DNA of 64,000 nucleotides from Saccostrea cucullata (taxonomy: Eukaryota). The notes under the pieces are model-generated. The model made no database searches. It saw nothing but the letters and a program-made list of their open reading frames with translations, and had not been told where the DNA came from. The stretch spans positions 372,001-436,000 of the forward strand of contig NW_026930103.1 in the NCBI RefSeq assembly GCF_032062105.1, read 5' to 3'. The translations under genes and the position numbers were made by a program. Of this stretch, positions 23,719 through 62,400 are shown one piece after another (the stretch's first letter is position 1; every line of letters starts with the position of its first letter).

Positions 23719-26700
23719 ATGACAACAGAATTTTATGAATCTCTGCCAACGTATGAGGAATTAACTGTTCCTGAATTGCATTTAACATGGCCTGAATTAA
23801 AAGCAGGGTCTTTATATTTTGGAAGATTTTGTGATAATCAATGCAAAGTAAGAATAACAAAATAACTCGAATTTTCTCAACACTGTACATTTTCACTCAG
23901 TTTGATTAGATGCAGATCTGCAGCTTGCTGCGGCCCGTTTTTTAAAAGAACTTACAACGAAGACCAAAATTTAATTTTGCTTATAACTTTCTAACTTACA
24001 TTTGAAAATGGTTTAAATATTTTTGTAAAAGCCTTTGTGACATGACCCGGCGAGTTTTCCTTTGAAGTCAAGCATACTGTAACTGCGATACAAAACACTT
24101 TTTGTGGGCGTTTCTTATGCAAATGAGCAGAAACTGTACTGTATCTGAAAAATATCAACGATACAGTACGGTTTATTTTTAGCGATGACGGAAAGCTTTA
24201 TCCGTATACAAACATACCAATGGTTCAATTCGCCATAGAACTGTTAGTATTTACTCAAAAATTGAGGTGAATTAAAAATAAAATTTTACAACGTAAAGAT
24301 ATTAATGTCGGATTCAAAAATTTTAGAAAGGAGGGAGTGGGGCAGTTCACAAATTATTATTTGAACCCCCCTCCCCCCCCCCAAAAAAAAACAAAAACGG
24401 AAAATCGTATTCCGTGGGGGTAGATTTATAATCAACCAACACCTATGTGCGTCATTTGGTTACTTGTTGATGAATTAAAAACCGTATGTATACAAGTTTA
24501 GAAAAAAAAAAAATTTAAGAAAGCGAAAGAGAAAAAAACCCAAAGGTGGGATGGGGGCACCAGTGAGTGTTGTATCCCCGTTTGGTTACTCTACATTTTA
24601 ATGAAAACGTGAAGTAAAATACACCCCCTCCCCCTTTCCTTTCATCTGCTTATTTCAATTTTGTATATGTTGACCGGTGGAGGACATTGTCGAGACATTT
24701 CTTCAGAATCTACGATCTCCCGAAGCATTTTTGTTTCAAAAATATTCCCACATGATTCTTATATATCAAAATGTTTTGCATTAAATCGTAGCTTAAACTG
24801 AAAAAAACATGTCATCAAAAGGTCAGCAAGAGCTGCATAGAGAAAAAAAACCCTGCGCAATTAAATCTAAATAAAGTTTTTGGAAAACAAATTAATTTAT
24901 GCATCTCTTAAATGATTTTAAAATGATAGATACCTGCACGTCCATCTCGCTCGGCATTTCAGTTGAAAATGTTTAAAATGGGATACTCAATCAACTTTCT
25001 GCAAAATCATTTGATTGGCTGGGAGGTATACACCCAAATACGCATGTAAATTAGTGAGGTCCTTAGAAAGGTCATGTCAAAGTCATTTAGAATACTCGTT
25101 TCACTGTATCAGAGATACAGGGCGGGGCATCGGCTCGAGCTATCGCTCTCGCCTCAAGCCCCGCCCTGTATCTCTGATACAGTAAGAAACTCGTACTCTA
25201 AATAATACAAGGTATACAGTACACGTAGAAATTTATTTTAAAAGTGTATAATATCAATAGCAATTTCAAACAGAATCATTAAATATGCCTTTTTACAATC
25301 TACTTAAGCTTTTTGTCTTAGTGGTAAGTTCTTTTGTAAAACGATCCCCTGGTCCTTAAAAATTGGATGGACGACCAGAGAGGTACAGTGCCATCTATTG
25401 TGAACACGTATCGTGCACAAAAAAGTGTGTATGAGCGAAGCAAATTTCAATTCTTCACATTCAATAAGTGGAAGAAAAATGTCCATTTATTTTTTTCTTT
25501 TTGCTGAGATCTCCAGGAAATATTCAAATGCTGAGTCAAGTTTGCTTAGCCTACCTGTTGATCTTCCCTCTGCTTTAGGCACTGAATCACATAAACTGAT
25601 AAAAATTGAAAATTTGGGTCTCCAGCTGCAGCTGTCTGGTTGAACTATTGGACAGACAGACCAGGGAGTTACAGATCCAAACATTGTAAAAACTTTCTTT
25701 GTATGCTGCATTTTTTTTGTTTCAGGCTTTAAATATTTTTTCCTAGTATTATATGGGTTTCCCATTTTTGTTGATTAATCATTATTTTTGATGATTTATA
25801 ATTATAATACAAGTAGTTCATATCATTTGAGGGAAATAAGCCTGTATGTTCATATGAAGGTAGATTAATTTTTCTGGATGTGCTACCTCAGATTTTCAGA
25901 ATTCTTAAAGAAAATATATTAATATAAATGAATTACATTTTTATCAAAGCCAAATTGTCCTCCAAAAGCACTTCATAACAAGTTATACTGTAGAAAGGTT
26001 TTACAAGTTATGTGATAAAAATACAAGTATATGAACTGTTAATTAATTTAACTGTAGTGCTAAATGATGTTCATTTATTGACCGACTGGCTATTTCGAGG
26101 GCAAACTGAAATAATTTAAGAGGCCAACTGTCTTAAGTGGCCAGTTTCCAAACTTCCCAAAGGCGGCCCCTTAAAACAGGTTGGACTGTATTGTTTACAC
26201 AAAAGAGTAACTGGATTGGTCTTATTGACAGCCTTTCCCTTTGTTAGGTTTTAAAAAAAACTAAATCCGACATCTTTTTGTGAAGCATGTTGAAAGTGTA
26301 GAGTCTTTGTCCTACAAAAAAAAAGTTTTCTGTGATTTCATGTTCCTTAGGCCATATAAAATTAATCTTTAGATTCTCATCCCCGCCCACCCCTCTCAAA
26401 ATGTCCCGCCCCGATGTTTTTTATTTTGATTTTTGGGTATTTTCATGTATTTTTATTCAGTAAGAATTTGGGTCAAAGTTTAAGAGTTATCTCCCGTCTG
26501 TATTAAAAGTCGCGTGTCGCTATTTAAAGCAAAAACGCCATGTGAAGAATGGAGAAAAATCGGCAATAAACAATAAAAGCAGTTTAAATGTGTAAGGAAA
26601 AGATAATTTGTCAGTATAGAGAAGGCAGAGAAGAAAAAATAGCATTAACAAATATAGATACCATCACTGGCAGGAGCAAGTATGTAGAGAGATTGTAACT

Positions 26701-29171
26701 AAGTAAAAATAGACGAGGAAAGTCAAGTTATATATAACGATCTCTAGCTGTGTGACTTACCTTTGAAATAAAAAAAAAATCTACAACATCGTAGACAGAC
26801 TGAAGAGAAGGCCTAGATTTTTCAGTAGAATAATTATTAGAACATTTATATAGATTTTGCAAAATAAGAAGTCACGCATACACAATTTATTGGTATCCCC
26901 ACCTCATTTTGTTGCCGTATAATGTGCACTTGATAATTTGTTAATTAACAATAAATATTTAACTTTTAAAGAAAAAAAATTCTTTAGATATTTAAAAGAA
27001 TATGAAAAGAATTAAATCTATTCATATTTGCATTAAAGTAATGAAAAAAATGTGTACGGGGCGTCCATTGTTTTGTTGATACTTAGGCCTACATATAAAT
27101 TAACAATTATAAAAAATAAAAAATAAAATCCGCCTGTGCCCCAATTTTTTTGCAAATTAGGATGAGAATCTAAAGATTAATTTTACCTGGCCTTAGTCTC
27201 CGACAACTTTTTTCTTCATGCAGTGATTTTTATTTTTAAAAAGTGAATTTGATATATTTCGACAGCAAAATAATGATCAACTTTTCTCCTTTTTTCCAGG
27301 AATTCATGTTATGTAGACAAGAAAATAAAAAGAACCCAACTGCATGCTTGAAAGAGGGCAAAGATGTTACCAAATGTGGCTTCCAGTTTTTCGGCAAAGT
27401 AAAGAAGCATTGCATGAAAGAATTTGAAGCCTACTATACATGTATAGACAGAGACTATAAAGGACAACTGGATTTTTCCATGTAAGTCCTGGTCTTTAGA
27501 ATTATATATTTATAAATAACAAATTAAGAAAATTACAGTAAAAAGTTTTAATCATTTTATGAACATCAGAGCTGCCAACCCTTACGATTTTGGCATAAGT
27601 CTTACTAAATAAGTGTCCAAAATATGTCTTACGATTTCTCACTATATGCTTCCGATTTCGTTTTTTTCTCAATCAGAGTTTAAAATATTGGAATTTTCAT
27701 AAGTGGCCGTCTACAGTTTCTAGTACTATTATAATTGAATACTCATAATTCTTACAACGCTTGCTTGCATCGTCGTTTCGGTTTTAGATGGCTAATCACA
27801 TTCATGTTAATGTTTGAAAGTAAACAAAATGGAAATGTGCCTTTAATTGCTCCGATTGCATGTCCGTTTTGATATTTTCAAAACATCTTCAGCGGCATGG
27901 GGCTTTGGCGGTCCCTGGACCATGCCTTACTATTTTTCATTTCAGAATGTTGGCAGCTCTGAAACATAATGGATCATCCAATCTAAGTAAAGTTAGATGT
28001 TAGGTCTGCCTGCAAACTTGCTACACTAATATCGTACAACATCCCATAGACTGAGGGTCATGTCAGAGGTCAGATTCCAAACAACTGTAGACTAATTTGC
28101 TTCAACAAATATACGGTGATTTTGCAGGTGATGATTTGATTGGTTGATAGAATTTGACCTCTGACATGACCCTCTATGTGGGATGTTGTTAGATGTTTAG
28201 TGTAGCGAATATGGGAGTGGATCTAACATTTAATTTTAATTAGATTGTGGATCAACTTCATTAACCATTAACCAACGGAAGTGGGTCCTAAACCCTTGGC
28301 TATCAAAGATGTTAAATGGATATTACATATTATGATTATTTTATAACATATCAAAATTGTTTACCCCTTGAAGATGTTAATGGATATAACATATTATGAT
28401 TATTTTACAAAATATCAAAATTGTTTACCCCTTGAAAATGTTAATGGATATAACATATTATGATTATTTTATAACCTATCAAATTTGTTAACCCCTTCAC
28501 TTCACTATACATATGAGCATGTTTAACAGTTCATGAATGTTGTATTACTTCAAGGTGAAAGCGTGGAAGTATCAGTTGTTATACATAATTTTATTTTAGA
28601 TGCGGGGGATATTTCTTCAATCTCTGTAGGATTCATGAAGGATGAATTCAATCTATGGTTAATGTAAATGCCCTTGGCATACATTTTCCAATTTTTTAAT
28701 ACCATTTATTTGATATGGCAATGTTATCAAAATTATGAATTTTTAAAAATTGAAAGATGCACAGGGAAAAAATATATATATTTTCGTCTCTATTAGCAAA
28801 CTGTAAGACAGTCAATTGTAGGCTTTGACACAAGGTAGAGAAGAAGAAATTTTTAATTTACATAAAACGAATGAGGAGAGAGAGAAAAAAAATATTCTCA
28901 AAATTTTTATGCTGAGTAATTTTCTTTCTGTTTTAGGTGTAGAAAACCTCAGCTGGTATTTGACGACTGCATGAAAGAAAAGCTGAACATTGATAGACCT
29001 TACATCGGATATTTTGCCCGAATACGTCTGGTAGACACTGAGAAACCACGCCGCGTCCTGAAAACACGGGAATACAGAAAACCCAAGGAAGCCCCTACAG
29101 CTGAAGAACTAGACAGGATGAAACTGAAGGCCGACCAATATCCTCTACACGTATTCAAATTGTTTGAGTAG
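23719..29171 (+). CDS. NDUFA8: NADH dehydrogenase [ubiquinone] 1 alpha subcomplex subunit 8 (~181 aa)
   Basis: Exons 23719-23847, 27300-27481, 28937-29171. MTTEFYESLPTYEELTVPELHLTWPELKAGSLYFGRFCDNQCK/EFMLCRQENKKNPTACLKEGKDVTKC...HCMKEFEAYYTCID.../CRKPQLVFDDCMKEKLNIDRPYIGYF. Repeated CX9C motifs and the LPTxEEL start are typical of NDUFA8. Confidence 0.95.
25086..25203. repeat. Long DNA hairpin/palindrome, probably the end of a non-autonomous element
   Basis: Perfect 26-bp stem, 25103-25128 with 25158-25183, plus outer arms. Confidence 0.8.
26350..27192. mobile_element. PIF/Harbinger-like MITE in NDUFA8 intron 1
   Basis: TIR GGCCA....AAAATTAATCTTTAGATTCTCATCC with its inverse at the right end; TTA on both flanks. 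Confidence 0.8.
27567..27961. mobile_element. hAT-like MITE
   Basis: TIR CAGAGCTGCCAAC / GTTGGCAGCTCTG; TSD not clean. Confidence 0.7.
27979..28247. mobile_element. Long-TIR MITE (Mutator-like) with imperfect 9-bp TSD
   Basis: ~100-bp imperfect inverted arms (CAATCTAA...GAGGGTCATGTCAGAGGTCA and TGACCTCTGACATGACCCTC...TTAGATTG); flanks TGGATCATC and TGGATCAAC. Confidence 0.7.
28306..28497. repeat. Minisatellite, 3 x ~64-65 bp
   Basis: AAGATGTTAATGGATATAACATATTATGATTATTTTATAACATATCAAAATTGTTTACCCCTTG repeated three times. Confidence 0.85.
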
Positions 29172-29798
29172 TTAATCTGAGTAGCTAAAAAATGAACACT
29201 TCAGTTTTATAAAAAATGTGAAATTTTATGTTGATTAAATTATGAGAGTTGATTGATGTGTTGTTTTCCTTATGTGAATTCTGTATCATTGTCTAATTTT
29301 TTGCCATGACCTTTTGACCTAAAAAAATTATTGCTTTCTTCGAGTCATTGGGAATTGTGATATAAAATACCATTTAAAGGGTTCAAAGAAAGGCAAAGAT
29401 ATCATCTGGAAACTATTTGTTTGCAGTTTATAACTATCTGACGTTTGATCTCAAAATCAGTAGTCTTTTCAAAGTTATTGATAATGTCTTGTCACAGGTA
29501 ATGGCTAATAATGCACATGTGAAATATGAAAACCTTAGCTCTTCTCATTCAAAAGTTATGACCAAGGTTAAAGTCTTTGTGACAGACTGACAGACAAATG
29601 AGATTCAATGTCCCCTTGCTTTTGCAAAATCATGGGACAAAAGGATATTCTATAGAAATAAGTAAAATTAGATCTTAGATTGGACAGATGTTTGGACAAT
29701 AAAATGCTATCTTTGGTTGTTAGTATGGTAATTAAGGTTGCAGATATATATTTTTTCTGCAATAGCTGCAACATTACTTACCATACTAACAAATTATT

Positions 29799-30352
29799 AA
29801 CAAGATGTATTTGTGAAACACTGATGCCCCTGTAGGCAGCTTATGGCAAAGGCTGAATTCACTCAAATGCATGTCAAACTCCAAAGGGCAAGGTCAAAAG
29901 TGTTGGTACCCAAAGGGTTTTTTTTTTTTTTACAAGGAATACACATGTGAAATGTGAAAGCCCTAGTTCTTACTGTTCAAAAGTTTAAGTTATGACCAAA
30001 GTTTTTAAAAGTGGGTCAAGGTCAAAAATATTTATACCGACTGAAAGGTCTTGCCACATTGAATGCACTTGTGAAGAATGAAAACCCTAAGTCCAACTGT
30101 TCAAAAGTTAGGGTCAAGGTTAAAGTGTGTTTTTTTTGTAAAAGTAGGTCAAGGTCAGTAGGTCAGATTTGGTACCCAAAGAAAGGTCTTGTCACAAGAA
30201 ATACACCTGTGAAATATGAAAGGCATGTATAGCCTCACCCACTCAATAGTTATTGACTAGGCTAAAGTTCACAACAGACAGACAGAGAGATAAAAATACA
30301 GACGGGACAAAAACGATATACCCCTGGAATCTTTTGATCCGGGGCATAAAAA
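29799..30352 (+). mobile_element. Helentron/HINE-like non-autonomous element
   Basis: Starts AACAAGATGTATTTGTGAAACAC; GGTCAAGGTCA-containing repeats; (ACAG)n microsatellite; short terminal palindrome CCCC...GGGGCATAAAAA. Related fragments at ~29480-29650, 35655-36050 (-) and 45236-45330. Confidence 0.6.
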
Positions 30353-33091: not shown

Positions 33092-33149
33092 TAGTACCAG
33101 ATACGGACAGGTTTCCACCCTGTGTAATCAATTTTTATTTTACATGTAC

Positions 33150-34600
33150 ATATAGAGGATATTCAATGTTTTGTGGTTGAATATGGAATTTATTTCACGA
33201 GTGGGACAGGATTTTTTATATTTTCATGAGTGCGAAGCACGAGTGAAAATATCAAAAAATCCTGTTTCACGAGTGAAATAGATTCCATATTCAACTACAA
33301 AACAATAATTCCAATCTTAATTTTATTTATTGATTCCTTGTGTTTTGATTGGACGAGAACAAATTCAAGAAAAAGTTTACACATCGATGAATTTTTCACC
33401 AGAACTACTTTCTTGACTGAGTAAAAACAATGAAAACAGATACTTCTAGTCCGTTTTAGCTAAATTATGACTACAAGAAACTTATAATAAAAAATGAATG
33501 AATGAATGAATGAATGAATGAATGAAAAGGAGATAAACAGGACTGACAGATGGGAATATTATATTTATGTCACTGTCGGATCACGAGTGTGAATTTTTGA
33601 AATCACTGATCATGCTGTCATTTTCTCGACGTTCCATATCAGCTCAGTTGGTATCGTTGTGATAGGGAAAAGAAACGTACCTCCACTTTTGCCTTTTAGC
33701 ATCAATTTCATATATTTACATCCTACAGTCTCCCTAAATCTTTGAACTTTCCAGAGCAAATCGAGGACGTTCGGTCTGCAACTTTTTTTGGCCATGGTCA
33801 AGGACGAATTTTTTTTTAGAAAGGTATTTACGATATTTTTTAAACTTAACCAACATTCAATGAGTTTTTATAAGTTTAATTATTGATTGTTTTGACAAAT
33901 AAAGTTGGATTTTATCTATATTCATCTTGAATACGTTTCTTTGCGGCATAAAGTATAACATGCAATACAAAATAACGTATATAATATGGCGGCCTCAAAG
34001 AGAAATAATTTTGAAAATTTAAAAAAATCGTAATTGGAATTATAAAATTAAACACTTTTTTTTTCAAGAATATAGCATGTAAAACTTATTTTACTCACAA
34101 ACTTTACATAAAAGTGCTTCGCACTTTTTTTTTTACCTGAAAAAGGCAAGTTTAACAAAAAAAAGAAAAAAGAACGTTTAATCCTATATTGAATTTTCTG
34201 TTTATTACATTAAAAAAAAATTCTTTGATTTTTCTTTTGCCTCTGTCTTTTTGTAATACAGTCATAGGCTCGTGACGTCACAGTTGAGCGGTTGAGACGT
34301 CATAGCTATGTGAAGTGAAAACACTGTAAATATGGATTTAGCAACATATTTTTGGGTAATTTTGACAGTTTTATTCGCTCTCAGAATGGTTTATTTATTT
34401 CCATCTATCTTATATTAGGTCAAGGAAGATTTTTTTACACCAATCTTCGTTATGGGAAGGGGAATCGAGAGTTTTCCCGCACTTCTGATATTCGTCACAC
34501 TGTGACAGGATATCATTTTGATATCCTTTCACACTGTGATAGGATATCATTTTTATTCAATGAATAAATTACAGTATTTCACTTGTAAAAATGTAATAAA
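33150..34600. mobile_element. Non-autonomous element starting with a ~140-bp hairpin (33167-33304)
   Basis: Long imperfect palindrome with GTGCGAAGCAC apex; CpG-rich interior; repeated TCACACTGTGA.AGGATATCATTTT near the right end. Right boundary approximate. Confidence 0.55.
33495..33525. repeat. (TGAA)n microsatellite
   Basis: About 7-8 tetranucleotide units. Confidence 0.9.
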
Positions 34601-35176
34601 TATAATTATTCAATCGTGGTAGAAATCATTTTTCAACGGAATCATTTTTTTTTGTATGTGGCAACTTAGGTACACTGACCCCTATTACTCTTTTTAAGTC
34701 TCTGTAACTTAACTCTCTGTTTAAACAAATACATTTTTCTACGACTGGCGGCCATTTTTTCTACGTCGAAAAAAAAGGCATTGTGTCATTATTCTTTGGG
34801 GGTATTTTAAACTCTTCCTTACACTGGCCGGAGTTAAATTAAATTTAACTTTCCGGTTATTGACAGTTTGCCTAAACTGGGTACACAATAAAAATTGTTA
34901 TACCTTTATAAAATTGTTCCCATACAAATCTTTTCGAAAAAAAGTCCAACACATCTGATGTTTTGCTGAGCGGGCATAAAAAAATCGATGTTGGACCGCT
35001 GAGTGAGATGTTGGACCGGTCGTTGAGATGTTGGACCGCTTACGTCACAGAATGGGCGGAGCTTAATCTCATTTACATTCGTTGGTGTTTAACAGTGACG
35101 AATCTGAGGTTACATCACGGAATACAGTTAAAAATACATGTATGTAGAAAAAAATTAAAATGAAAGGTATAACAAA

Positions 35177-35323
35177 ACATTTATTGACGGAGTTCGAGGG
35201 CAAAATGCGTTTTGTCGACCCTCGAACCAAACTGTCTGCCTTCGGCCTAACGGCCTCAGGCAGACAGTTTGGTTCTTGGGTCCGACAAAACGCATGTTGC
35301 CCTCGAACTCAGTCAATAAATGT
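35177..35323. repeat. Long DNA hairpin, probably an element end; same terminal motifs as 52025-52157
   Basis: ~65-bp arms ACATTTATTGAC...CTGTCTGCC and GGCAGACAG...GTCAATAAATGT. Confidence 0.8.
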
Positions 35324-37027
35324 ATAGTATTGACCGTGAAGAAACGGTTTAATGTATAAAAATGTGTAAAAATATAATTACCCGATGACTTCTGAATTGA
35401 TTTCTATTTGTTTGTAAAAAATCAAATGCTAATTTTGTTGACATTGTCAATTTAAGTTTTTCAAAAAGGATTATGTAAGAAATACCATCATCCGGTATCA
35501 TGCAAAAGGCCTGGTAAGGTACCTAATTTTTGTGAGTAAACATGTTAAAGTAGCGATACTTCAATGACAAAATCTCAGAATAAAAAAAATTAGGAACGTA
35601 TGGTCTGTGCTTAAGGGGTCTCGACCCTCTGCTATAATAAAAGATCCAGGGGTACATGTATATGTTTCCCCCTGTCCGTCCGTCTGCATGTCTTAATTTT
35701 GTCTGTTTATCTGTTCGTTAATTTTTTCCGCAGAAACTTTAACCTTTGTCATAACTTTTGAGTGGGTAGGTCTATGGCTTTCATATTTCACAGGTATATT
35801 CCTTGTGACAAGACCTTTCGTTGGGTGTTACCATTTGAACTCTTGACCTAGACCTTCATGTAGGCGTTTGACACACGTTTACAAAAAAAAAAAAAATTAA
35901 AAGTAACCTATAGCTTGGCCATACTGAACTTTTGAACAGTAGGTGCTTGTGTTTTCATACTTCACATGTGTATTCTTTCAGTAGATATACATGTTTACAA
36001 ATATTCTTGACCTTTTGTCCTTGGCCTTACATTCTGACCCACTTTAAAAAATGTTTAATCCTGAAAGTTTTTTTTCAAAAGTAGGTTATATTCCAAGTCA
36101 AGATAGAAAGGCCAAAACTGTGATATCCAAAGGAAGGTTTTGCCACTAGGAATATACCCGTGAATGAATATTTGGACATCATTTTCTCGTTCCTTAACAT
36201 TCCGGATTCTTTTGGCCCGTCTGTGTGGCATTTCTTGCTTTTCTGAGCTGTGAGATTTCCTGTTAGAAAACAGAAACATTTTAGAAGGTTGCATCAGTTA
36301 TGAAATTATCATTCATCTTCTGGGAGTAATAACGACTGGTGACGATATGACAATGGCATAGGTATGACAAGTTCTGCACAATGTTGTTTGATTTAGCCAT
36401 TGCCCGTGGTGGATGTAACACGCTACTTTCAAGTACAAGTCTTAATCAGCTGTTTTCGTTTTCACCTTGTTTCATGCAAAGTTTTATCAATGCCGAGACA
36501 TATAAAACCGGGATTTAATATCTCTCTCGGATTTTCCCTCAAAACTTTTGACTAGGAATTCTTATTTCCTACCAAAACCAGGGACCTATTACTAGTATAT
36601 ATATAGTTCCCTGCCAAAACAAATCATGCCAAGAAAACCTTAGCATTCTCTCCATATAGCAAATTCAATAAAAGCCGAATTAACGTTAATCTGTGATTCT
36701 TCCCCGGGGAGATGTGCGCCAAGCAATTAATGTCAGCAGGTTTGAGGGAGGGATCTTAAAATTTACTGGGTTTAACTTATAGGTAGAATACTAATTATTT
36801 AGAAGATTTGCCCCCCCCCCTGTCCCAAAAATAGGGAAGGAAATTAATTATAGTAAAGTAATTCTTTAAAAAAATAAGCTGTATTTCAATTTTTTACATA
36901 GTTCAATTTCAAAATATTTTTTTCTTAGTATAAATTGGCATCTGGTAGTTGTGGAAGTACCGCGTTGAAATATAGATAAAAGGGTACCAAATTCCCGGAC
37001 GCTTACATCATTTCCTGGTTGAACAAG

Positions 37028-37988: not shown

Positions 37989-37994
37989 CAAACT

Positions 37995-48200: not shown

Positions 48201-51200
48201 GTGCATCTTGCACAAAGCTTTCAAATATATCACATTCATTAGTTTTCTTGATATTAATCTTGTCTCAATTAAAATGCATTGCCATTTCCTTCATGTTATG
48301 AAACAAGCTTCCCATTCCAAAGAATGGTCAATAATTTAAATGTCAGCACAAATCATATGTCTACAATAACATACAAAGAAATCAGTCTCCCAACACATTA
48401 CCATAGAGAGCTAATTTCTCTTCTTCATCCCTATCCCACTCGGCTCCCTTTGAGCTGTTCATTCTGTTATAGCCTGGGTGTTCACCAGACAGGGTGGAGA
48501 AATCTGAGGAAGAGGTCTTCATGATGGTTTCTGTAACAGAGATGCAAATTAGTTTTTTTTTTACACTAACAAACTTTCCCTCAGAAGGCTATACACACCT
48601 TGACTAAGAATGGGACATACACATGTACATGCAATAAATGCTCATTGCTATGAACATACATAATTGTTTACAAAAAATTGACAAAACTTGATTGAACCGA
48701 GAGAATAAATTTGAGATATCCAAGGAATTAAGATATTGAAGGTAAAATACACAAAGAGTAAGTAGTTGGGACTTCCAAATAACTTTGATATATCCATGAT
48801 ATTCGAGATATCAGTATTCAAGATAAAAAAGTTCAACTGTATTATATAATTGACTTACCAGACCCATTGGATACATGTAAAACTTCAATGTCATCTTCCA
48901 TATCATTCTCTCCATGATGAACATCCACTGTACTCCCATTCAAATAGAAGTCATCTTCCGTGTGAACGGCTGGTTTTGAATTTGTGTTATCTTGAGTGTG
49001 ATTGGATTGTTTTTCATTATCAAGTACAGAACTTAGTAAAGTTGATTTCTGTTCTCCATTCTCAATAATCTGTATACTACCATCATAATCCTTCGCAGAT
49101 ATCACCTGTATAATACAGAACATATAGATAATTCATTTTTACTAAAAATTCAAAAAAAACCAGTAAAAAGTAGATACATGTAACAGGAAAAAGACATGAT
49201 ATTTATACCCTGTTGATCGAAAATTTTATAATTCTACAAGGAGAGGTGGTAAGGTTTCTTTCCTAGTCCAATATTTATGATATACATGTACATATTTTTA
49301 ATACAGAAAGCATATCAGTTTTTAAAAATTTGAAGTGACATATCATATGTGTCTTTAAGAAAATTCTTCAAATACCTGTAGCCAGTTTACACCATAGTGG
49401 TCTCTCAAGACTTCTATTTCTTCTCGTGTTGATGCCTGTCCCTCTACAATTCTTGTTGGTGAAGGAGCTGTTGGAAAGTTAAATGACAAATTTAGATTTA
49501 TTTTAAAGTCGGTTAAGTAAAACACATTTACTGGGAAGACATACATCTTTCTACCAAGTATACAATAATAATAAACCATCAACTACGTAGAGTGAAAAGC
49601 AGGTACAATGAAGCATCAATCTTTAAGTTATTTCTTGTGTTCTCACTAAAAATGTGATTGTGACATGATACTCAATCATTTACCTATAATTTCAATGTAG
49701 TCTAAAATTCAAGAAAAAACACAAATCTTTAAATAATTGTCTAAAATAAAGTGGATTCCTGGTGTGGGGACATCATCATTCTCATCCCCTTCTAAAAAGT
49801 CAATACACTAAATTATATTCATACTGACCTCTTGAACTCTCTGGAGAGGACTGGTCGGTGGTTTCAGTGACCTCACTTCCTTCTGTGTCTGTCCTTTGTG
49901 ACCTTACCCGGGATTTCTTCCTCCGGCTTTTCCTCCTGCCTGGGGACCCCACCTTCACTGCTTCTGCAATGTCGTCCGTGTCGTCAAAATTGTAGGACTG
50001 AGCCAGACTTGGGTTATTTGTTGACTGTCTGGAGCTTCTTTCTGCTGGCTGTTTGCCTGTGGACAATTTTCCTGTGCTCTGAAGGTGCTGTAAAAGAAGA
50101 AACAAAGCTTTATTATCGATGGTGTTCAAATTATCAATTAATATTGTCAGTGCCATTCTCTATCCTTGAAAACAAATTTAGTTGTAATCTAATGTCTTTT
50201 TCATAAAATGTATGTGTTGCATGGTGTATGTGGCAAACCTCTATATGGGTACTGAGTATATCTTTCAGATCATTAAATCTTATCATTTGAAACTTTAATA
50301 TTAATGTTCATGCATATATTGGGTAAATGGAATTCCTTGCAGAATTTGATATTTGAACAAGATTAAATATTACATGTGTTAAGTATTGTAATATTTCTAT
50401 TACAACCAACATCNNNNNNNNNNNNNNNNNNNNNNNNNNNNNNNNNNNNNNNNNNNNNNNNNNNNNNNNNNNNNNNNNNNNNNNNNNNNNNNNNNNNNNN
50501 NNNNNNNNNNNNNNNNNNNNNNNNNNNNNNNNNNNNNNNNNNNNNNNNNNNNNNNNNNNNNNNNNNNNNNNNNNNCCAGGATTTCTGCTGGTTTAACAGG
50601 TTTGCCATCCAGAACAACCTAAATATAACAAAATACCAAAATGAATTAAAAGAATTCCACATAATTTTCTGTAACAATAAGACACGTTATCTGCAACAGC
50701 ATAACCAGAGATTATAACTGAAGCCTTACAGTAATCACGTGTGTCACGTACGGTAGTCAAAAAATTTACAAAATCTACATGTATCTCAACAGTACTGAAC
50801 TTCACAAGTTATGTAATCCAAATGTCTTGGTACCACAAAAGCACATATTTGATATTTTTAAAATGTTTTTAGTTACAACATATTTGAGATCTTATTAATC
50901 TATATATATGCATCATACCTCTTTTGAAGTGATAGCTTTAGATGACATCTGATGAAGGGATCGGATTCTATGTTGTTGATGATAACTTAAAGGGTTGCCT
51001 TGCAGACTTATCTGAAATTCAGAGATTTGTATTTCATACAGATAGTTTTCAAGTCTCATATTACACTGTAGCATAAATATAGGTTAAAGAAATGTTATAG
51101 CTGTTATTTCTATACATTTGATTCTATTAACATTAAAATATTTTGTATTTCTAATAAAATTTTCATCAAAAGAAAAGATTTTTTAAGCAACTAATACTGT

Positions 51201-54200
51201 AAAACGAGAATATTTAGCGCACAACTAATTTTAGCACCTTTGGCGCAAGAGCCCATGAACGCTAAAATTTATTGTGCGCTAACAGATTTCAAAATAATAT
51301 TTTTGTGTGTGTTCAAAGCTTTTCCATAAGTACATGTAAACCAGAAGGCGCGATTACATAATGTCGAAGGGTCATTGGATTTTATAAACACACTAGCACT
51401 GCTCATGGTAGGATCGATCAAGAAAGTTCTGCCAAATTATAATTTAATTAAACTATTGTTACCCCAGTAGTTGTTACCTGATTCTTATCATTAGCACCTT
51501 CAAAGTTTTGCTTCTCGGCATGTCAATCATCTACCTCCTCAAGGTAAACAGTGCAATTAAGCATGACGATTGAGCTTGCAGACAATACCTGATTTTGTTA
51601 TACCCTTATAAATATCCTTCTATATATTTATTACTAATAAAAAGTCCAACAATAGAAATGTTTATTACGTCGGTCTAACAATTTCACTATTGACCGGTCT
51701 TACATAAGAATTGTTAGACCGCAACGTCACTTGTCTGTTACGTCACAATTAATAATCATCGTTCAATATCGGCGACGCGAAAATAGCCGAAGTTAAGAGC
51801 TATTAAGAGTTGTTGCTAACAGCAAGGTAAGGTAGAAGGGAAGAGTATGTTTTGTGATAAATAATTTTTGTGATATAATAGATTTATAATTGATTTTGTT
51901 TGTTCTCAGCTTGATGTTTTATATTTACTGAAGAAGCCATAATTTTCCATATAAAATAATTGATAGTATAGCGTGTATTGATAAAATTGATCAATCTTAA
52001 GTGAGCAGTGAAGGGTACAACAAAACAGTTATCGGGCAACATATGATTTGTTGGACCTGAAGATGAAAATGTTGCCCTTGGCCTGCGGCCTCGGGCAACA
52101 TTTTCACCTTCAGGTCCAACAAATCATTTGTTGCCCTCATACCCAGTCAATAACTGTATAATGATTACCGTTTATCCAAGTAACTTTCTTTGGATGCATG
52201 CATTGTATTTATATGAATGAAATACGTAAATACACCATTTCTTTTATTTAAAATAAAATGAATTTTAACACTGAGTCATTGCAACACCACGGTAAAGTTG
52301 ACGAATATTTACTTATATACGGGAGCGCTATTGTGTTTCCTTGCTTGACTAATCAAAAAGTCAAATACGGGTGTGGATTAAAAAATATATATCACATTTG
52401 TATATTTTTATGACAAGTGCAAGCACTAAAATTTATTAGCGCCAATGCATTTCCACCTGCGTTTGCGCTAAAATACGTATGCACCAAATTTTCTCGTTTT
52501 ACAGTATTTATCTAATGATAAAGTTCAATTCAGATCAAGCAGTACATAATCATAAGTATAAAGGCTATATTTACCACATGGAGGGAGTGAAGTTTGTTGA
52601 AGACCCCCAGACAGGAGTGGTCCACCAGACAGTTCTCTGAGGCATCTAATTCCTCCAGATTTACCAGCATCTCAACTCCTGTCAATTTACAGGTAAGCAA
52701 AAATAATGGACTACATACTAGTATTATATTATGTGTAGTGAAATTTAAAGCTTTTCCTGACTGTGGTTCCTGATTATATTGTTTTATTATCAGTAACAAT
52801 TATACATGCAATTAAAGCTCATCATCTCAAACTCTGATATCTCAAATACCAGGGATATGTCTATTGAGTTTGCACTCCCAACCACATATTTTAAATATTT
52901 TTAACCCTGGCCATCTGATATCATGAAGATTAATCTTGGTCACAGTGAGTTTAGAATAACAAGGTTTTACTGTACTTCCACTTACCAGAAAGATTGTCTA
53001 GGTTATTGTTCCTGATGACCAGGGTTTGTAGTTTATTTTGAACTGTAATGGAGAATGTTGGCACAGAATCCAACATGTTGTATCCAAGATTAATTCTCCT
53101 CAACTCTGTCAGGTACTGGGGACAAAAAATATAGATTTTAATTTAATTGATGAGAAGGGACTGTTTTATACTTTCTCCACAAAATTTAACAGCAAGAAAA
53201 TCTAGTCAAACAAGAGATGTTTGTAAAACACTTATGCCCCCCCCATCCCCCAAATTGGAATTTTTCCAAGTCCAAGGGGCATAACTCTATCAAAAATGGC
53301 GCGATCGTACCCAAAACAGAACTTGGCCTAGATATTCAGCTGATAAATCTGTGAATATGTGCAACCTCTGCAAAGAAAATGAACAGAAACTGCAAATAAC
53401 AGGAAGTGGAATTTTTCTAAGTACAAGGGGCATAATTCTGACAACAATGGTGCGATCGTACCCAAAACAGAACTTGACTTAGATATTCAGCTGATAAATC
53501 TGTATACTATTTCAATATTTGCAACCTCTGCAAAGAAAATGAATGGAAACTGCAAGTAAATTTTTCTAAGTCCAAGGGGCATAACTCTGTCAAAAATGGC
53601 GCGATCGTATCCAAAACAGAGCTGGCCTAGATATTCACCTGATGTATCTGTATACCAAATTTCATTTCAGTATGTTCAACGGTTGTGAAGAAAATGAACA
53701 GAAACTAAATGGACCAACAGACAGCAGCAAAGCAACATGCCCTCCCTTCTTTGAAGGGGGGGCAAAAAAAGTTGCATGCATTATGTTTTAACAGAAACTG
53801 AAGACAAAGCTATCAGAGATACATGCACCTGCATATATCAGTACTAAATAATATTTTTCAAAACAATACGTATATGTGACATTACACCATGTAAAAAAGT
53901 CTGTGTTTAATTGTTGTGTCTTTCTTCATATTTCCCATTTTCACATAAATCTCACATACCTCAAGGTAATTCTCTACTTTATCAATGTTGTTGTGACTAA
54001 GATCTAAAAGGTGTAAACTTGGCAAAAGTCTCTGAAAAAAATATGTTAAACTTATCAAAAGGTTATTAGTTACACAAAATATTGCTTTCTTCCACATTTT
54101 GTTTAAATGAATTTCAGTTTCATCATAGTCATTTTAAATCACTGTGAATAGCTCCTGTTAAATCCATAGTACTCACTAAAGATGCATCCAGTTTGGATAT

Positions 54201-55736: not shown

Positions 55737-56451
55737 ATTATGAAAGTCTTTCACGTGTACATCATTACATGTCCTGGTTTAGCCCCTGTCATCATGGTCA
55801 TACATTATGCATATTAATTTATAAAAAGCCTGGATAATTTCTCATTTCTGCGCATCTTTGTCAAATTATTGTTAAGTCTATTTGGCAATTAACAACTTTG
55901 AGGAAAATCAAACTACCACAAACGCTTTAAATGCAGGAAAAGGTGACAAGTTGAGTTTTGTTGATAAACTTTACCCTCATGTGACAAAAATAGTTCAGGA
56001 AATGACGTCATGGAAAAAAGAATATGATTAGACTAAAATACGTAAACTTGTAAATTGGAGTTCTCCATTAGGTTTTGTCACTGTCGAACATATTACGTTT
56101 TATGAAATGGATTTTCAAATTTTATCCAATATTTACATTCATTTCAGATTAATTTTAATAAGAGTTAGTAGTTTTTAATACCTATCCGGGGCTTGTCTAC
56201 TATAATATTGTAGGTTCTTATTTCTACATCTGATTTTTTTTTTAAATTTATGTAGTGTATTACATTAAATATTTTCTAAATGTAATTATTTTTGTATATT
56301 TTGATAAGAAAAATAAGGTAAATCAATCACATAAATGCAAAATATGATAAATTAAGTTTCAAGAGTTGTCTATTTTACATTGAAGGAGTAATTAGTTTGC
56401 CCTTTACTTTCATTTTAATTTACGCATGCGTTGTGCATGTCAACACGCACC
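55737..56451. promoter_or_regulatory. Probable bidirectional promoter region shared by STK11IP and NAA35
   Basis: Divergent start codons about 715 bp apart; contains CACGTG, TGACGTCA and CGCATGCG motifs. Confidence 0.5.
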
Positions 56452-59400
56452 ATGGAAGGGGAAACACAACCACCAAGGTAATGACAAACAAAGGTTTATT
56501 TCTGCATCTATTGCACGTAATTTATTTGTTCAAGTTTTTAAGATGAAAGTACTGATGTTAAATTTATGTTCTGTGATGTACACACTGTTCAGTGTGTTCA
56601 CAAACAGGTCGGACATTAATGTAATGCATGCACAAGCATGAAACTTGCAGATGCACACCTTGTCATATGAAAGGCTTTGCATTTGCAGTTACACTTGATG
56701 ATAGAATTTTGATATTGTTTTCTCAAAGGAAAAGCTATCCAGGTTTTAATAGCGAGCGCAGCAAGCGTCGCGAATCGACGCAGGTCACTGCGAGCTCTTA
56801 AAGCAATGCCTGGGTGAAGAGAGAATTTTGACAACTGCACATTCATTTGATAGAATTTTTTGATGCAGTAATTTGGACCCACAATGCATCGCTTCTTACA
56901 CAAGGCTAAAGCAACGTTCTCGCGAGAATAAAAACAAAAAAGTTAAACAAATAATAAACTTGCATTGATTTAATGAATTTGTTGCAGAAAAATGGTCTAT
57001 TAAACGGTTCTTCATTTCAAATCAGCTCTGTTCAAGCTTCAGTTTGATAATGCAACGTGACGTCAGAGTCTTAGATGCGTTGAATGTCACGTGCGGTTTG
57101 ACGAGCCTGATCTAAATGAAAACTGGATAAGTATCTGCGCTGGCCCTAACGGTCACACCGTCAACATATTATGATCCATAGATCGTATTTGAAGTGGATG
57201 TGTAAAACTTGCACTGCATTTGTGTGAATGCATTTATATATGCTGTTTTATGTGAATGAAAAAAGAAATTTGTAAAATCACAGACACTTATAACAGAGAT
57301 ATATTATAACTCCACCATTTACAGGGGTGTAGGATCTGTAAAGATTTAAATCTATATACATTCACTATCAGTGACAAAATTATAAAAGTGCAAGGAATAT
57401 ATATGGAAAAAGCTTAGAAGAGGTACTGCAAACAAAAACTAGTACAATTTTCCTTAATGTGGACACTGTAATTAGGGGTGGGACGATATACCGATACACC
57501 GATACATATCGATATTTTCCTCCAAGATACGGTTTACGATACAAGCATTCAAATATCAGTACGAAACGATACACGAACGACCTATCCAAAAACTGAAAAT
57601 GAAAGTACCTGACCTTGGAAAATGGCGGCTTGTACGAGCGAAGAGATGATGTTGATATTGAAAACACACTTTAGAACTAATAAGTCGTTGGTTAGGGGTA
57701 AAACATTATCTCTTTTTAGCAGCCTCGGAAGATTGGACAAGAAAAGTTCAGTATGTAATGCGTGCTATACACAGAAAATATCGTTTCCAGAACATTTGAT
57801 ATTATTAATTGTTAGTCCATCTTGAACTTTTTTTTTGTAATCTCAACTTGGCTACAGACTTTCAGCAGTGAATTAATAAAAATGTAAATGTGATCGATTT
57901 TTTTAAAATGAATTTTTAGTCAGTTTTCTCTGATAAACTACACAACTATTTGTAAACAACTTCTGAATTAGTGAATAGTAATTTGGTAATAATAGTATGT
58001 ACATGCATTATTGTTTTTGTAAAGTTTTAGTCAATGAAATTGATGAACTTCAAGTATTAATTTCAAAGAAAACATGATTTGATACAGAATAATTTGTTCA
58101 TTTAATGTCAAGACAAAAAAAGGAATAAAATACTAATTTTTCTGAATAGTTTTGTAATTTATCATAATATCGAGATACGTATCGTATCGTGACAATATAT
58201 CGAGATACGTATCGTATCGCAAGATGTGTGTATCGTCCCACCCCTAACTGTAATTTAATTGAACTTGCTTGAAGACCGTATAGTTTGCACTAAAACCATC
58301 AAATCATTAAAAACTGCCCTCTACAGCCTAGTTGTTTCAGTTAAATCAACAAGCTCTCTAACAGTCTATCACTCTATGCATCAGGACCTGACTGACCAAC
58401 TGCTCTCACCATCATAGAAAAGCCCAAAATAAATAATTTAATGTAGTCATTTTCCCCCTTTCTTATGCATAAATTTTAAGAATATTGTATAATGATATTA
58501 AATTTTTATCTTTTTCACATGACAGTGTTCCCAGTTCTCAGGGTGACCACTTAAGGACTGAAGATAAACCCCGATATGACTGGGTTGACATCACAGATGA
58601 ATTCATGTCATCAGCTTCAGAACTCCAAATGGGGGAACTTCTCCATGACACAGGGTAAGTCATGATACATCATTACATCAGGGAACAAAACTCAGACAAC
58701 TCCTTGATATGGTATAAGTTGTGATACTCTTCAGTAAAAGAGATTAAGATGGGAGGAGAATTAGTCCATGAGACAGGGTAAGTTATCACACCTTGGCTTG
58801 TTTCAGAGATCCAGATGCTAGATTTCCCAAATAAATATGTGTGTGTATGTGGGGTGGGGGGTTAATTTGTAATCATTCGGATGTCATTTGTTTCAAAGCG
58901 CCCTAATGGAGATTTCCATCATACCTTGGGTAACTAGGTTTTACATCAATCAAAGAAGTGAAAGTTCAAATTCTGCCATTAACAGCAACCATGTTACATT
59001 AAGTTGAAAATTTTGAGGGGAGCATGTCCTGGGATTCCCATTGTATATTCATTCCCACCAAGTGCTGATGTAGTGCAGTCATTCTCATATTCTCTCTTTT
59101 CACCATTTTCCCCCTTCCACAAAAAATGATATATAGTCAAATTAGAAAAACCTAGATAAATCACTGACATGTTTGTTGCATCATTAAAATTGTACAAAAA
59201 ATACAGAAAGGATTAACCTTAAAAAATGATTAACACCCTAATTAATATTAACAGATTTGGACTGTTTGAAGCCATGTCAGCCATTGAGATGATGGACCCT
59301 AAGATGGATGCTGGTATGATGTGTAACCAGATACAGAGGAAAGTCCTGACCTTTGACCTGGCTTTAGAGGTACATTTCAACTCGTTTGTCATATATGATG

Positions 59401-62400
59401 TATACCATGTTAGATGTTATAATTAGCCAAACCTATAGCTAAGAAATTCAATAATAAGTCATCTAAAAATACGCCTTTAAACCCCTATAGAGAAAACAGT
59501 TTATATTGAAGACATCTAAGTCTTGAGTATTATTAGTTATCCAGATTCAGTCAAGAATGTACAGGGATTATTCAGGGTTTTATTCCATACACCCTGAGAC
59601 CGAAGGCTGAAGGGTGTATGGAATACAACCCAGGGTAAATCCCCGTACAGCCTTGATTGGACCTGGATAACAAATTTATTTTCTATGTACCCAAATAAAT
59701 TCTTTGTAAACATAAGTCCAATCAACTGTGTTTCAACCAATTGTGACGTCATGTTATTTGCTTTTTATCATAGAAAAACTGCATTGTTATTGTCTTGTTA
59801 TTTATCTCCGGGTAAAGTTGAGAGTAAGGTAATTTACTCCCGGATTGCTAACCAATCAAATCTTGTGTTACAAGCTAGATAGAAAATAATGTTTAATTTA
59901 TATATTTAATTTTGTATTGAGACTTGAGGAGAAATAACCATATTTTTCTGCATTCATTACAGAGTGGGGCCATTAAAATTAAAGACCTGACAATTCCAGA
60001 ACTGATAGGCATTATGGACACATCCCTGGCTTGTTTGGTAAGCAATGTAGTTCTTATATGCTTGCATTGGGAATGATGTTGATACACAATGAGGAACCTG
60101 TTGATGTATATATTACATTATAGGACCCATTGTTTATTGCCATAGTTCAAAAAACAAGATTTTTCCTGTTTTGAATTCTGTAAGTTACTGGACACTGTAT
60201 GTGCCATTTGCATAATTCCACTGAGAAAAAAGCACTGAAAGAATAAACAACACATGAGAGTACTATCATCTTTCTCACATTTCACATTTCTACTGTACAC
60301 AGGCCACATGGTTGGAGGGTCATTCCTTGGCCCAGACAGTCTTTACAAATCTGTACCTACACAATCCATATGTGATTGAGGACAAATGTTTGAAGGCATT
60401 CAGCATCCTAATGTTGAAACTGGTGGACCATATCAGGGACAGGGTGAACAGGGCTGGGGTTTTTGAAGAGGTGAGTATGATTTTTACTGAAATTAATTTG
60501 TTTTAATAGATTTAATGTTTTTGGTGTGAGTACAATTTTGAATTCTGAATGGCAAGAATCTCCTTATCACAAAATGTCATCATGTTCATACACATGCGCC
60601 ACTGCAGGTCAATATACTGTATACAGGGAACCCTCCCCCCCCCCAATTAATTTTTGCCCCTTTGGCCCTTGTCCTGATTGGGCAGATATGAAATAGGATG
60701 AATTCAAAGAATACAGCATTGTTTCTTAAACAGACAGTGTTTGCACACGTAAAAAAGTGAAGTAGGGGTAAGTAATCTTGTATACAGTAACTAAAGCTTC
60801 ATCTGATGATTTCAATGATGCTTTGAGTTGTACTTCAACATATAAACAATATCATTCGAAAATTATCATCAAAGTTGTAGTGTTTGGAAAATGAAACAAT
60901 AATAATAAATATTGACTTTATTGAGACAGTATAATCATTTAGTTAATGTCTCAAAGAATTTGATTCAACTCATCCATCAGTTCAAAAAAAAAGTTTGTCT
61001 GATTATTTAATTATTCAATTGTTCTGTAAACTTTACTGCAACTTGAGATGAAAGATAAAATCATAAATTTTACTGGTAGAAAATAAGGTTTCCCATAAAA
61101 GAAATGTAAAAGTCTGTAATAAATATGCTTAAAAAAGAATCTGTGTTTGTAGGAGGACTTCCAAAGTATGACATATGGTTTCAAGATGGCTGCTGATGTC
61201 ACGGATACCAGAGCAACAGGGATGATGAAAGAAGTCGAAGATGACCTCAACAGAACTCTCAAGGTCAGTCAATCAAAACAACTAAAAATTTAGACTTACG
61301 AGAATTGTTTTTGGTCAGTTTTCAAAAATAAAATCTTAAGAGTCTTAGGATTTGTTATTTGATATTGTATGCTTGAGAAAAATCAATAGTGTTTGTAAGG
61401 CAGTGAGTCTTTACTTTTTACTCTATTAGCTTTAAGTAATAAAAATAAGTTCATAAAAACTGGTCAACTTATGTATAAAAATGTATTAAGTATACTAAAC
61501 ATGGAATCATTTTAATTTGTGGGGGTCAATAGTCTTGGGCATGAAAAATTTTACTTGTTCGTGAGGATGTAATTTCATGGGTTACTCATTTATTTGAGAG
61601 ATTCAATGAATCAGTATGCTTTAAAAAAGTAATGTTCAAGGGGATGTAAATTCGTTTATCAGGGTGACCCACGATATCCACAAACAATGACCCCCCATGA
61701 ACAATGATGATTCCACATTATGTACTTTACATCATGTTACAGTCACAATATTATTTCAGTTGTTGTTTAAATATACATATACATGTATTTCACAAAGTCC
61801 AAAGTCAAGTTAAACTAAGATGAAGCAAGGTCCTGCAAAATTCGCTGTCATTTTCTAGACCTATTAGTTTTATTTAAAAGTGGCCACAACAAGCTCTGTC
61901 CTTTGTGGGAGGTGAGAAACATGATACTTATACTCTAGAAAACTGTCCCTAACGGAGTATGAATGGTCATTAGTAATAAATATAAATATGATTTTGCAGC
62001 AGCTGTATTGATTGTACCTGTACAACTTTTTGATAATTAGAATGACTTGCACATTGGAATTTCCATTCTTATGACCCTACCTAGTCGACAAATTTGTTAC
62101 AAAAAGGGAAATCCCCTGTCTGAAACAAAACTCATTTTGATTGACAACAAGTGATGCCTTGAAACAAATTTTTGATCCTCAATACATGTTCTCTTGTTTA
62201 TTTCTATATTGGTTGATGGATGGTACTAGAAACCTCCCAATACATAGAAAAAAAATGTATGACCTTTTCCATCTAAATATGAAGGATAGGTAGAATTCTC
62301 CTGATCTATCGTAACGATGCAAATCCGTTTGAAGTGTAATTCGTCAAATTCCCTTTTCTTCATGATGCAATTATCAATACACCTAATGGCAAAAAATAAT

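Follow-up and report, generated by a model that had tools for sequence, protein, structure and literature searches.

The DNA considered here is a stretch of 64,000 nucleotides from the bivalve Saccostrea cucullata (contig NW_026930103.1, positions 372,001 to 436,000), which is referred to as the window and is AT-rich (~33% G+C), the host assembly being 1.17 Gb in size. An earlier note on this DNA reported five long hairpins, and all of them were recovered (Table 1); among the six longest inverted repeats with a short loop that the window contains, five are these hairpins, and folding against shuffled sequence gave z-scores of -9 to -21 on either strand of each. The five hairpins are probably the 3'-terminal stem-loops of non-autonomous Helentron-type (HLE2/HINE-like) elements, which would most likely be mobilised in trans by the RepHel proteins (HUH nuclease plus Pif1 helicase) of the host, whose genome has hundreds of intact RepHel genes. 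Their stems and tips carry a module of GA/GA mismatches and a GNA or GNNA loop that is confined to one strand. As the earlier note had observed, no transposase lies in the window, where no open reading frame has a Pfam match, and a tblastn search of the window and of 90 loci with 40 Helentron proteins as queries returned no match. No known RNA family was detected in an Rfam gathering scan of the window. The assembly gap listed in Table 1 is irrelevant to the finding; it is separated by more than 1 kb from all of the elements, the closest being element 4 with its start at ~51593.

Table 1. Coordinates of the elements, hairpins and other features in the window (subTIR, subterminal copy of the terminal inverted repeat, TIR; for hairpins, the strand is that of the purine-loop fold)
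Feature	Coordinates	Strand	Parts or apex	Size and copies
Element 1	24035..25209	+	5' TIR 24035-24047; subTIR 25070-25081 (one 1-nt gap); hairpin 25086-25203; tail ~5 nt	~1.17 kb, non-coding; at least 267 copy candidates, ~96%; ends from 29 other copies
Hairpin 1	25086..25203	-	GA-GAGC-GATA-GCTC-GA; CGAG/CGAG tier near base; GA bulge	
Near-palindrome	29717..29792		begins TTGTTAGTATGG, ends in its reverse complement	76 bp
Element 2	33152..34600	-	tail 33152-33166; hairpin 33167-33304; subTIR ~34200-34211; terminal TIR ~34586-34600	~565 bp in intact copies; at least 968 candidates, ~97%
Hairpin 2	33167..33304	+	GA-GTGC-GAA-GCAC-GA, includes GCGAAGC; second CGAG/CGAG tier ~33198/33270	
Insertion in element 2	33304..34187		small hairpin aaaaGTGC-TTC-GCACtttt, ~34110-34128	884 bp
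Element 3	34894..35331	+	5' TIR 34894-34906; subTIR 35163-35175; hairpin 35177-35323; tail 3-8 nt	~440 bp; at least 2014 candidates, ~97%
Hairpin 3	35177..35323	-	GA-GGCC-GTTA-GGCC-GA; family tiers CAAG/CGAG and CGAG/CGAG	
Assembly gap	50414..50575			
Element 4	51593..52162	+	5' TIR 51595-51607; subTIR 52011-52023 (1 mismatch); hairpin 52025-52157; tail 3-5 nt	~570 bp; at least 1404 candidates, 94-97%; relative of element 3
Hairpin 4	52025..52157	-	GA-GGCC-GCA-GGCC-AA	
Element 5	59524..59889	-	tail 59524-59535; hairpin 59536-59671; subTIR 59676-59686; terminal TIR 59879-59889	~365 bp; old family, 74-79% identity; at least 772 candidates
Hairpin 5	59536..59671	+	GA-GACC-GAA-GGCT-GA (window copy)	

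All five elements are constructed in the same order, namely a 5' TIR, a body, the subTIR on the 3' side, the hairpin and a tail of 3-14 nt. From the hairpin, conserved DNA extends for 230-1050 bp in one direction (~425 bp where element 2 is intact) and for only 3-14 nt in the other, and the far end of the element is an 11-13-nt sequence whose reverse complement stands 1-8 nt from the hairpin. When about 30 copies of each of elements 1-3 were compared, a T was found at either boundary of the conserved block and nothing else was common to the flanks, which suggests that no target duplication is formed. The ends, which comprise the TIRs and adjoin T/T flanks, read TTGT... on one side and ...AATAC, ...TATT or ...CTCTA(T) on the other. 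Since this arrangement of TIR, body, subTIR, stem-loop and tail at an apparent T-T site matches the published HLE2 structure (PMC11417382; Cg_HINE of Crassostrea gigas, PMC7492417; DINE-1, PMC2374699), the elements were assigned to the HLE2 type. The HINEs, including DINE-1 of Drosophila as well as Cg_HINE and Helitron-N*_CGi of C. gigas, share with them the 5' TIR, the 3' subTIR with a palindrome, the short tail and, as it seems, the insertion at T-T or T-rich sites without duplication, and they are likewise non-coding and present in very high copy number, in some cases in a bivalve host (PMC7492417, PMC2374699, PMC11417382). A GTCY microsatellite and central tandem repeats are frequent but not obligatory in HINEs; element 1 contains neither the microsatellite nor a central satellite array. 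The suggestion that the hairpins are signals of non-autonomous families is supported, in that they are terminal signals of high-copy non-autonomous elements.

Several other assignments were tried and rejected. A reading of each hairpin as a whole miniature inverted-repeat transposable element (MITE) disagrees with the conserved DNA, which continues from the hairpin for hundreds of bases in one direction only, and a cut-and-paste MITE or foldback element disagrees with a 3' repeat that is internal to a hairpin of 120-145 nt plus tail, as well as with the apparent absence of a duplication. A canonical Helitron (HLE1) would have 5'-TC and 3'-CTRR termini, insertion between A and T and no TIRs, whereas the termini found here are unlike these, TIRs are present and the flanks are T/T. 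The right hairpin of Helitron1 (Helraiser) also lies a few nucleotides from the 3' end, serves as terminator and is conserved in structure more than in sequence (PMC4778049, PMC5876387); it is short, GC-rich and perfect, and the HLE1 termini that accompany it are absent from the five elements.

The earlier note had proposed a HUH nuclease or a tyrosine recombinase as the enzyme that reads the hairpins, and the former fits the anatomy of the elements best. The host genome harbors at least 471 Helitron_like_N (PF14214) candidates, many of them in uninterrupted frames of 2000-2850 aa (the longest 2848), and RepHel candidates carry the HLE2 marker DUF6570; one locus (L093) has DUF6570 together with Helitron_like_N, and relatives with PIF1 and an APE endonuclease were found. 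In another organism (ENA assemblies; loci L097, L098, L100 and L101), the HLE2 layout was verified on an autonomous element with RepHel, PIF1 and APE. Its 5' end is a 12-nt repeat that folds into a small hairpin with an adjacent complementary repeat, its interior consists of a (GTCA)n microsatellite followed by the RepHel, PIF1 and APE genes, and its 3' end, which was set by the divergence of three copies, bears a perfect 12-nt subTIR ~24 nt upstream of that position. The TIRs of this autonomous Helentron differ from those of the five families. The gaps between its RepHel, PIF1 and APE frames contain two almost perfect palindromes of ~230 bp with the centres TCGA and GTCGACGT (L097 15600-15840 and 18060-18300; L098 3600-3830 and 6040-6280), which are conserved in two copies and may be introns or nested foldback elements.

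A number of observations weigh against the assignment to Helentrons or against the apex module as a general feature of their ends. Among the loci read, no autonomous copy with the termini of any of the five families was found. The only autonomous Helentron with a defined 3' end has a short, weak palindrome without the GA module there. None of the eight RepHel loci on contigs among the listed pattern matches has an exact motif match on its contig, a co-location test that has little power because it covers the first 100 places per pattern. Palindromes of published HLE2 elements and HINEs have stems of 7-20 nt, in contrast with arms of 50-70 nt in the five hairpins. At least one probable HLE2-type hairpin (L005:1848-1999) is devoid of the motif, and short hairpins downstream of the Helentron of locus L103 present c(GAA)g on the coding strand. 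Helentron loci of Mytilus edulis (L094) and Saccostrea echinata (L096) and an ENA locus (L095) contain no long hairpin or motif, and a brute-force TIR search in these loci gave noise only. The hairpins of L103 (12270-12660), whose Helentron is 55% identical to the host RepHel, have 13-bp stems, fall into two types and are repeated in tandem arrays every ~54 nt, which resemble stacked element ends.

The apex sequences listed in Table 1 were read by the earlier note essentially as they stand, with the following corrections. In the window copy of hairpin 5 the apex is decayed, with one mismatch and one wobble in the inner stem gacc/ggct, and the intact GA-GGCC-GAA-GGCC-GA with the outer stem of this hairpin (ACACCCT...AGGGTGT) occurs at other places in the genome. 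The second-tier 'GAT' in hairpin 1 is specific to this copy, the family having 'gg' at that position. The opposition of GA by AA in hairpin 4 agrees with the previous reading; GA-GGCC-GCA-GGCC-GA and a relative with a GAA loop are present elsewhere in the genome.

Further GA/GA mismatches had been reported lower in some stems, and a copy-by-copy tabulation of elements 1, 2 and 3 (28, 29 and 29 copies) revealed that they are fixed in the families, in two, two and three tiers, respectively. Element 2 has CGAG opposite CGAG at two levels (29/29 and 27/29 copies), a single 1-nt bulge and the loop c(GAA)g in all 29 copies, while element 1 has two CGAG/CGAG tiers (28/28 and 27/28), a GA bulge and the loop c(GATA)g. 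In element 3, TGAG/CGAA and CAAG/CGAG were each found in 27 copies and CGAG/CGAG in 24, together with the loop c(GTTA)g and two further single pyrimidine mismatches (C.T and T.T) in the stem. All seven 2x2 internal loops of these three elements are purine-purine, stand in a pyrimidine-GA-purine context and lie on the same strand as the G..A loop, so that the opposite strand of the module carries T.C/C.T bubbles and a pyrimidine loop. An independent hairpin in a flanking locus (L029, ~1014-1190) follows a like design with a 5-bp inner stem.

The proposal that structure rather than sequence is shared is upheld by these data: the inner stems covary (GTGC/GCAC, GCCC/GGGC, GGCC, GAGC/GCTC, GCAC/GTGC, GTAC and GACGC/GCGTC), and the GA/GA mismatches, the flanking G-C and C-G pairs and the G..A ends of the loop are fixed. 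The description of the stems as mostly unrelated was overstated, because some families are related: those of elements 3 and 4 have near-identical TIRs and the same GGCC core, which reduces the independent cases from five to four. Readings of GA...GA as parts of a hammerhead, a K-turn or a C/D box were dropped, given that the loops follow DNA rules (GATA, GTTA and triloops) and not GNRA.

The module was then sought throughout the host genome, where the reversed form of each pattern served as its control and the complementarity of the inner stem was scored among the first 100 matches listed. The pattern with GA..GA and a GNA loop (GAGNNCGNAGNNCGA) gave 2145 matches against 239 for its reversal, and 60 of the 100 had a complementary inner stem, where 6 are expected by chance; with a GNNA loop, the figures were 1395, 288 and 53. 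The strand-swapped pattern, TC..TC with a GNA loop, gave 338 matches (reversed 435; complementary ~68 of 100, from one family), and the fully paired patterns TC..GA and GA..TC gave 192 (279; 11) and 441 (304; 35). The motif totals ~3,500 exact matches in contrast to ~530 for the reversed controls, at a density of roughly one exact core per 330 kb. The GA/GA mismatches with GNA or GNNA loops are 5-9-fold enriched over the controls; the strand-swapped and fully paired patterns are enriched weakly or not at all. In copies, intact cores with GA/GA and a G..A loop number ~2,000, and each alternative is 5- to 60-fold less abundant, the fully paired TC..GA being ~60 times and GA..TC ~8 times rarer.

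Inspection of 10-nt flanks showed separate families in which pairing of the outer stem, too, continues past the GA/GA step, with at least 17 distinct complementary core types among the matches listed. Their inner stems are GGCC, GCCC/GGGC, GGGC/GCCC, GTGC/GCAC, GCAC/GTGC, GAGC/GCTC, GTAC and GACC/GGTC, and their loops are GAA, GCA, GGA, GTA, GATA, GACA, GTTA, GTAA, GCTA, GCCA, GCGA, GAAA and GTGA. The same-strand coupling of loop and mismatches holds in all but one family. Abundant 15-16-mers that form no hairpin, such as GAGATCGGAGTTCGA and GAGGTCGTGAGTTCGA in a conserved ...TTCGAGAGATCGGAGTTCGAGCCATCGAGA context, were set aside, and this repeat looks like the T-arm region of a tRNA-derived repeat.

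Two well-characterised structural motifs of DNA are combined in the module. The mini-hairpin GCGAAGC melts at 76.5 C, GCGATAGC at 71 C and GCGTTAGC at 69.5 C, while the pyrimidine-loop analogue GCTTTTGC melts at 33 C (PMC13037366). In the CGAG block, which is typical of pyrimidine-GA-purine steps, two cross-stacked sheared G:A pairs are enclosed between a C:G and a G:C pair (PMC10085684). The apexes hold exactly these mini-hairpins (GCGNAGC / GCGNNAGC) and CGAG blocks: GCGAAGC is found in the tips of element 2 and of the L029 hairpin, GCGATAGC in that of element 1, and GTTA or GAA loops closed by C-G, as well as CCG..GG variants, elsewhere. Because the tips are mini-hairpins and the tiers are CGAG blocks, the purine strand should form one continuous stacked helix with a compact, nuclease-resistant tip, whereas the other strand would contain two or three T.C/C.T bubbles and an open loop.

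Comparable strand marks exist in other systems that process folded DNA. In the left-end hairpin of minute virus of mice, a GA/GAA 'bubble' makes the arms unequal for the HUH nuclease NS1, and in the imperfect subterminal hairpins of IS200/IS605 and in integron attC sites, unpaired or mismatched bases reveal top versus bottom strand. The latter are likewise folded single-strand hairpins, though bacterial and short, and the comparison with the present hairpins implies no kinship of sequence or protein. Palindromes of Streptomyces telomeres and terminal hairpins of parvoviruses are also fold-back termini with GNA loops closed by sheared G:A (PMC5449611), but they are replicon ends of linear chromosomes or viruses rather than transposon ends, with different enzymes and geometry. 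Mini-hairpins occur at single-strand replication origins (phage G4, ssiA) as well; mini-hairpins and CGAG blocks have been treated as oligonucleotide or origin motifs, and are not known to have been described as a recurring, strand-specific module at transposon ends in eukaryotes.

The polarity of the module relative to the element is uniform in the cases examined. The conventional HLE2 top strand, on which the hairpin comes last (3'), bears TC/TC and the pyrimidine loop in each of the five window elements, and the purine strand, its complement, has the hairpin at its 5' end. Like polarity was seen in L029, where a paralogous locus without the insertion sets the boundary at the hairpin foot, and in L016, which has a 12-nt repeat pair and a GAA loop only. 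It was further seen in a 470-bp element of another organism, in which three CTCG/CTCG tiers accompany a GCGAAGC-type tip on the complement; this element lies ~20 nt upstream of the autonomous Helentron and is oriented as its genes. A second such hairpin, with TC on the coding strand, lies ~800 nt past the 3' end of another copy of that Helentron. Since these hairpins stand beside an autonomous Helentron of another organism, the module is not confined to the host genome. In L029 (1016-2065; G000:C9605), the low-copy element that begins with the hairpin is followed head to tail by a copy of element 2; the pair is absent from the paralogous C22888 locus, where ~23 other bases stand, and the composite may have moved as a unit or arisen from two successive insertions.

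We think that the purine-strand fold is the structure under selection, a view that is favoured by the Y-GA-R context, the 5'-C...G-3' closure and the GAA, GCA, GATA and GTTA loops, which match the published stability rules for purine motifs. Mismatches and loop are the only features that distinguish the strands, as a perfect palindrome folds alike on both, and, being fixed, they would provide a mark of strand identity and a docking site for an enzyme that acts on folded single-stranded or extruded DNA. Pairing between TIR and subTIR would join both ends of the element at the foot of the hairpin. It is tentatively suggested, as a possibility falling short of a favoured conclusion, that the end signal of these Helentrons is a one-strand non-canonical fold, composed of sheared G.A CGAG tiers and a GNA/GNNA cap, on the complement of the strand that is transposed in Helitron1-type elements. 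If the purine fold is what the enzyme uses, the bottom-strand hairpin may snap shut as a lock that keeps the top-strand end single-stranded and exposes its cleavage site to the HUH nuclease, or Helentrons of this type may be processed on the strand opposite to that of Helitron1, the hairpin then being origin-like.

Selection for the purine fold has to be set against several facts. The complementary strand was said to lack the stability of the purine strand, and this is not borne out by the standard DNA parameters of ViennaRNA, under which both strands fold nearly equally; the purine strand is ahead by 0-5 of 39-75 kcal/mol in the window copies and by 8 kcal/mol in L098, the model having no terms for sheared G.A or mini-hairpin motifs, so that the strand asymmetry is taken from published stabilities. 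A pyrimidine triloop can also equal its purine complement in stability (PMC5449611). Among the matches to TC..TC there is just one genuine hairpin family, TC-GGGC-GAA-GCCC-TC with a few hundred copies, in which the outer stems are perfectly paired and the coupling is opposite, with CGAG blocks on the strand of the TTC loop. In Helraiser, moreover, cutting and joining are confined to the top strand (PMC5876387), and by analogy the transferred strand would here be the pyrimidine strand.

The last point leads to an alternative that we consider possible, if rather unlikely, according to which the elements do have Helentron ends but the functional fold is that of the pyrimidine (top) strand, whose T.C/C.T bubbles and open loop would be read by RepHel at termination, the stability of the purine strand being a by-product. 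Irregularities in hairpins are indeed used by the TnpA transposase of IS608. Helraiser, of which only the top strand is processed and whose 3' hairpin is the terminator (PMC5876387), offers a precedent; the hairpin stands at the 3' end of the pyrimidine strand in every case tested, and the mini-hairpin formed by the 5' TIR of the autonomous Helentron and its inverted repeat presents c(TTC)g on the coding strand. What this alternative leaves unexplained is why the bubbles and loop of the top strand should always complement Y-GA-R and C-closed GNA/GNNA, for which no reason is known; these features coincide with the stability rules of purine motifs (PMC13037366, PMC10085684, PMC3201870).

Mobilisation by a Crypton-type tyrosine recombinase (YR) was judged improbable. 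Under this scheme the looped-out hairpin would leave subTIR and TIR as inverted arms of 11-13 nt around a short spacer, and the GA/GA mismatches with the loop would select the strand. Folded recombination sites are used by integron attC sites and by CTX phage, and the host genome has at least 1184 Phage_integrase candidates. The arms of 11-13 nt with a gap and tail of ~4-16 nt in sum come close to the geometry that PMC3212892 quotes for YR sites, which, like the defined autonomous Helentron that lacks a long hairpin, speaks for a recombinase and counts against a RepHel. The HLE2 layout, by contrast, has been documented in elements that encode RepHel, one of which served to verify it here, and animal Cryptons are reported to have no terminal repeats of any kind (PMC3212892), whereas all five elements possess inverted repeats. 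Crypton termini of fungal and oomycete groups have direct repeats of 4-6 bp (PMC3212892), and no direct repeat of this length exists between the ends of the elements and their flanks; insertion appears to take place at a plain T-T without a shared core. Two weak tests point the same way: the one YR locus read (L102), which sits in a multi-ORF DIRS-like unit (ORF, open reading frame), has no hairpin within 1.7 kb on either side, and none of the six YR loci on contigs among the listed pattern matches has a motif match within 5 kb. In L102 (G000:C2273:21300-25200), a Phage_integrase-type frame of 332 aa is preceded by an open frame of at least 450 aa on the same strand and followed by a frame of 208 aa, and this locus has the look of a retroelement of the DIRS/Ngaro type, not of a Crypton.

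It is very doubtful that the CGAG (CTCG) boxes act in duplex DNA as same-oriented protein-binding sites in both arms, with the folded mismatches incidental. Element 2 does contain the 8-mer CAYGAGTG four times in one orientation, but across families only the four nucleotides Y-GA-R are kept, the variants TGAG, CGAA and CAAG preserve the opposition of purines and not the sequence, and the tiers accompany a C-closed GNA/GNNA loop that is meaningless in a duplex. That the shared apex has no function and derives from common descent of the families or from chance decay of palindromes is hardly credible, for although some families are clearly related (elements 3 and 4; the similar outer stems of GCCC and GTGC types), outer stems have diverged past alignment while inner stems covary and GA/GA is retained, the mismatches are present in family founders and not in single copies, and both the enrichment over controls and the rarity of fully paired forms described above stand against it.

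The history of the copies in the window also deserves mention. Element 2 is split by the insertion listed in Table 1, which contigs from other sequencing runs skip, and these contigs break at 33152, 34600, ~34887 and ~35326, that is, at the ends of elements 2 and 3. The inserted repeat sits exactly at the foot of hairpin 2, and other copies of element 2 are without it; it carries its small hairpin ~60 nt from its right end and ends in ...AATCCTATA, like the end of element 2, and its junction is not T-T in either orientation. None of the sequencing runs contains the window locus. In runs labelled as two other organisms, contigs matching elements 2 and 3 at 90-99% identity number in the thousands, with almost no unique DNA between the two elements (33100-35400). 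Judging from these contigs, the families of elements 2 and 3 appear to be common to, or very recent in, close relatives; the runs cover elements 2 and 3 but not their unique flanks, and hence contain no empty site for any of the five elements. The near-palindrome of Table 1, which has neither GA/GA mismatches nor a GNA loop, is similar to an HLE2-type TIR pair whose arms enclose no body.

The class of elements is known, and it is the long, tiered, purine-coded and strand-polar structure of their ends that appears to be undescribed. In the literature searched, the HLE2 stem-loop is described as a short palindrome kept by compensatory change, without a conserved mismatch or loop rule, in contrast with the two or three GA/GA tiers and the GNA/GNNA loop found here. 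A full-text search that joined Helitron with the vocabulary of G.A mismatches and mini-hairpins retrieved no relevant paper among the top-ranked matches. To our knowledge, recognition of Helentron (HLE2) ends and the roles of their inverted repeats and 3' stem-loop have been the subject of no tests, all mechanistic work having been conducted on one Helitron1 element.

A strand-specific module with fixed mismatches in tiers and covarying stems, made of two well-characterised non-Watson-Crick motifs, supplies defined substrates for the question of which strand is processed, and such substrates could tell a terminator, an origin-like site and a recombination site apart. If the proposed role of the purine fold is true, it would represent a general strand-identity code for eukaryotic single-strand transposition, or, in a still further version, an attC-like site for Crypton recombinases. 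The module also furnishes a simple descriptor for annotation, by which thousands of elements could be recognised that might otherwise readily be taken for palindromic MITEs. Finally, very stable long hairpins of one strand at such a density may matter for the replication and genome stability of bivalves.

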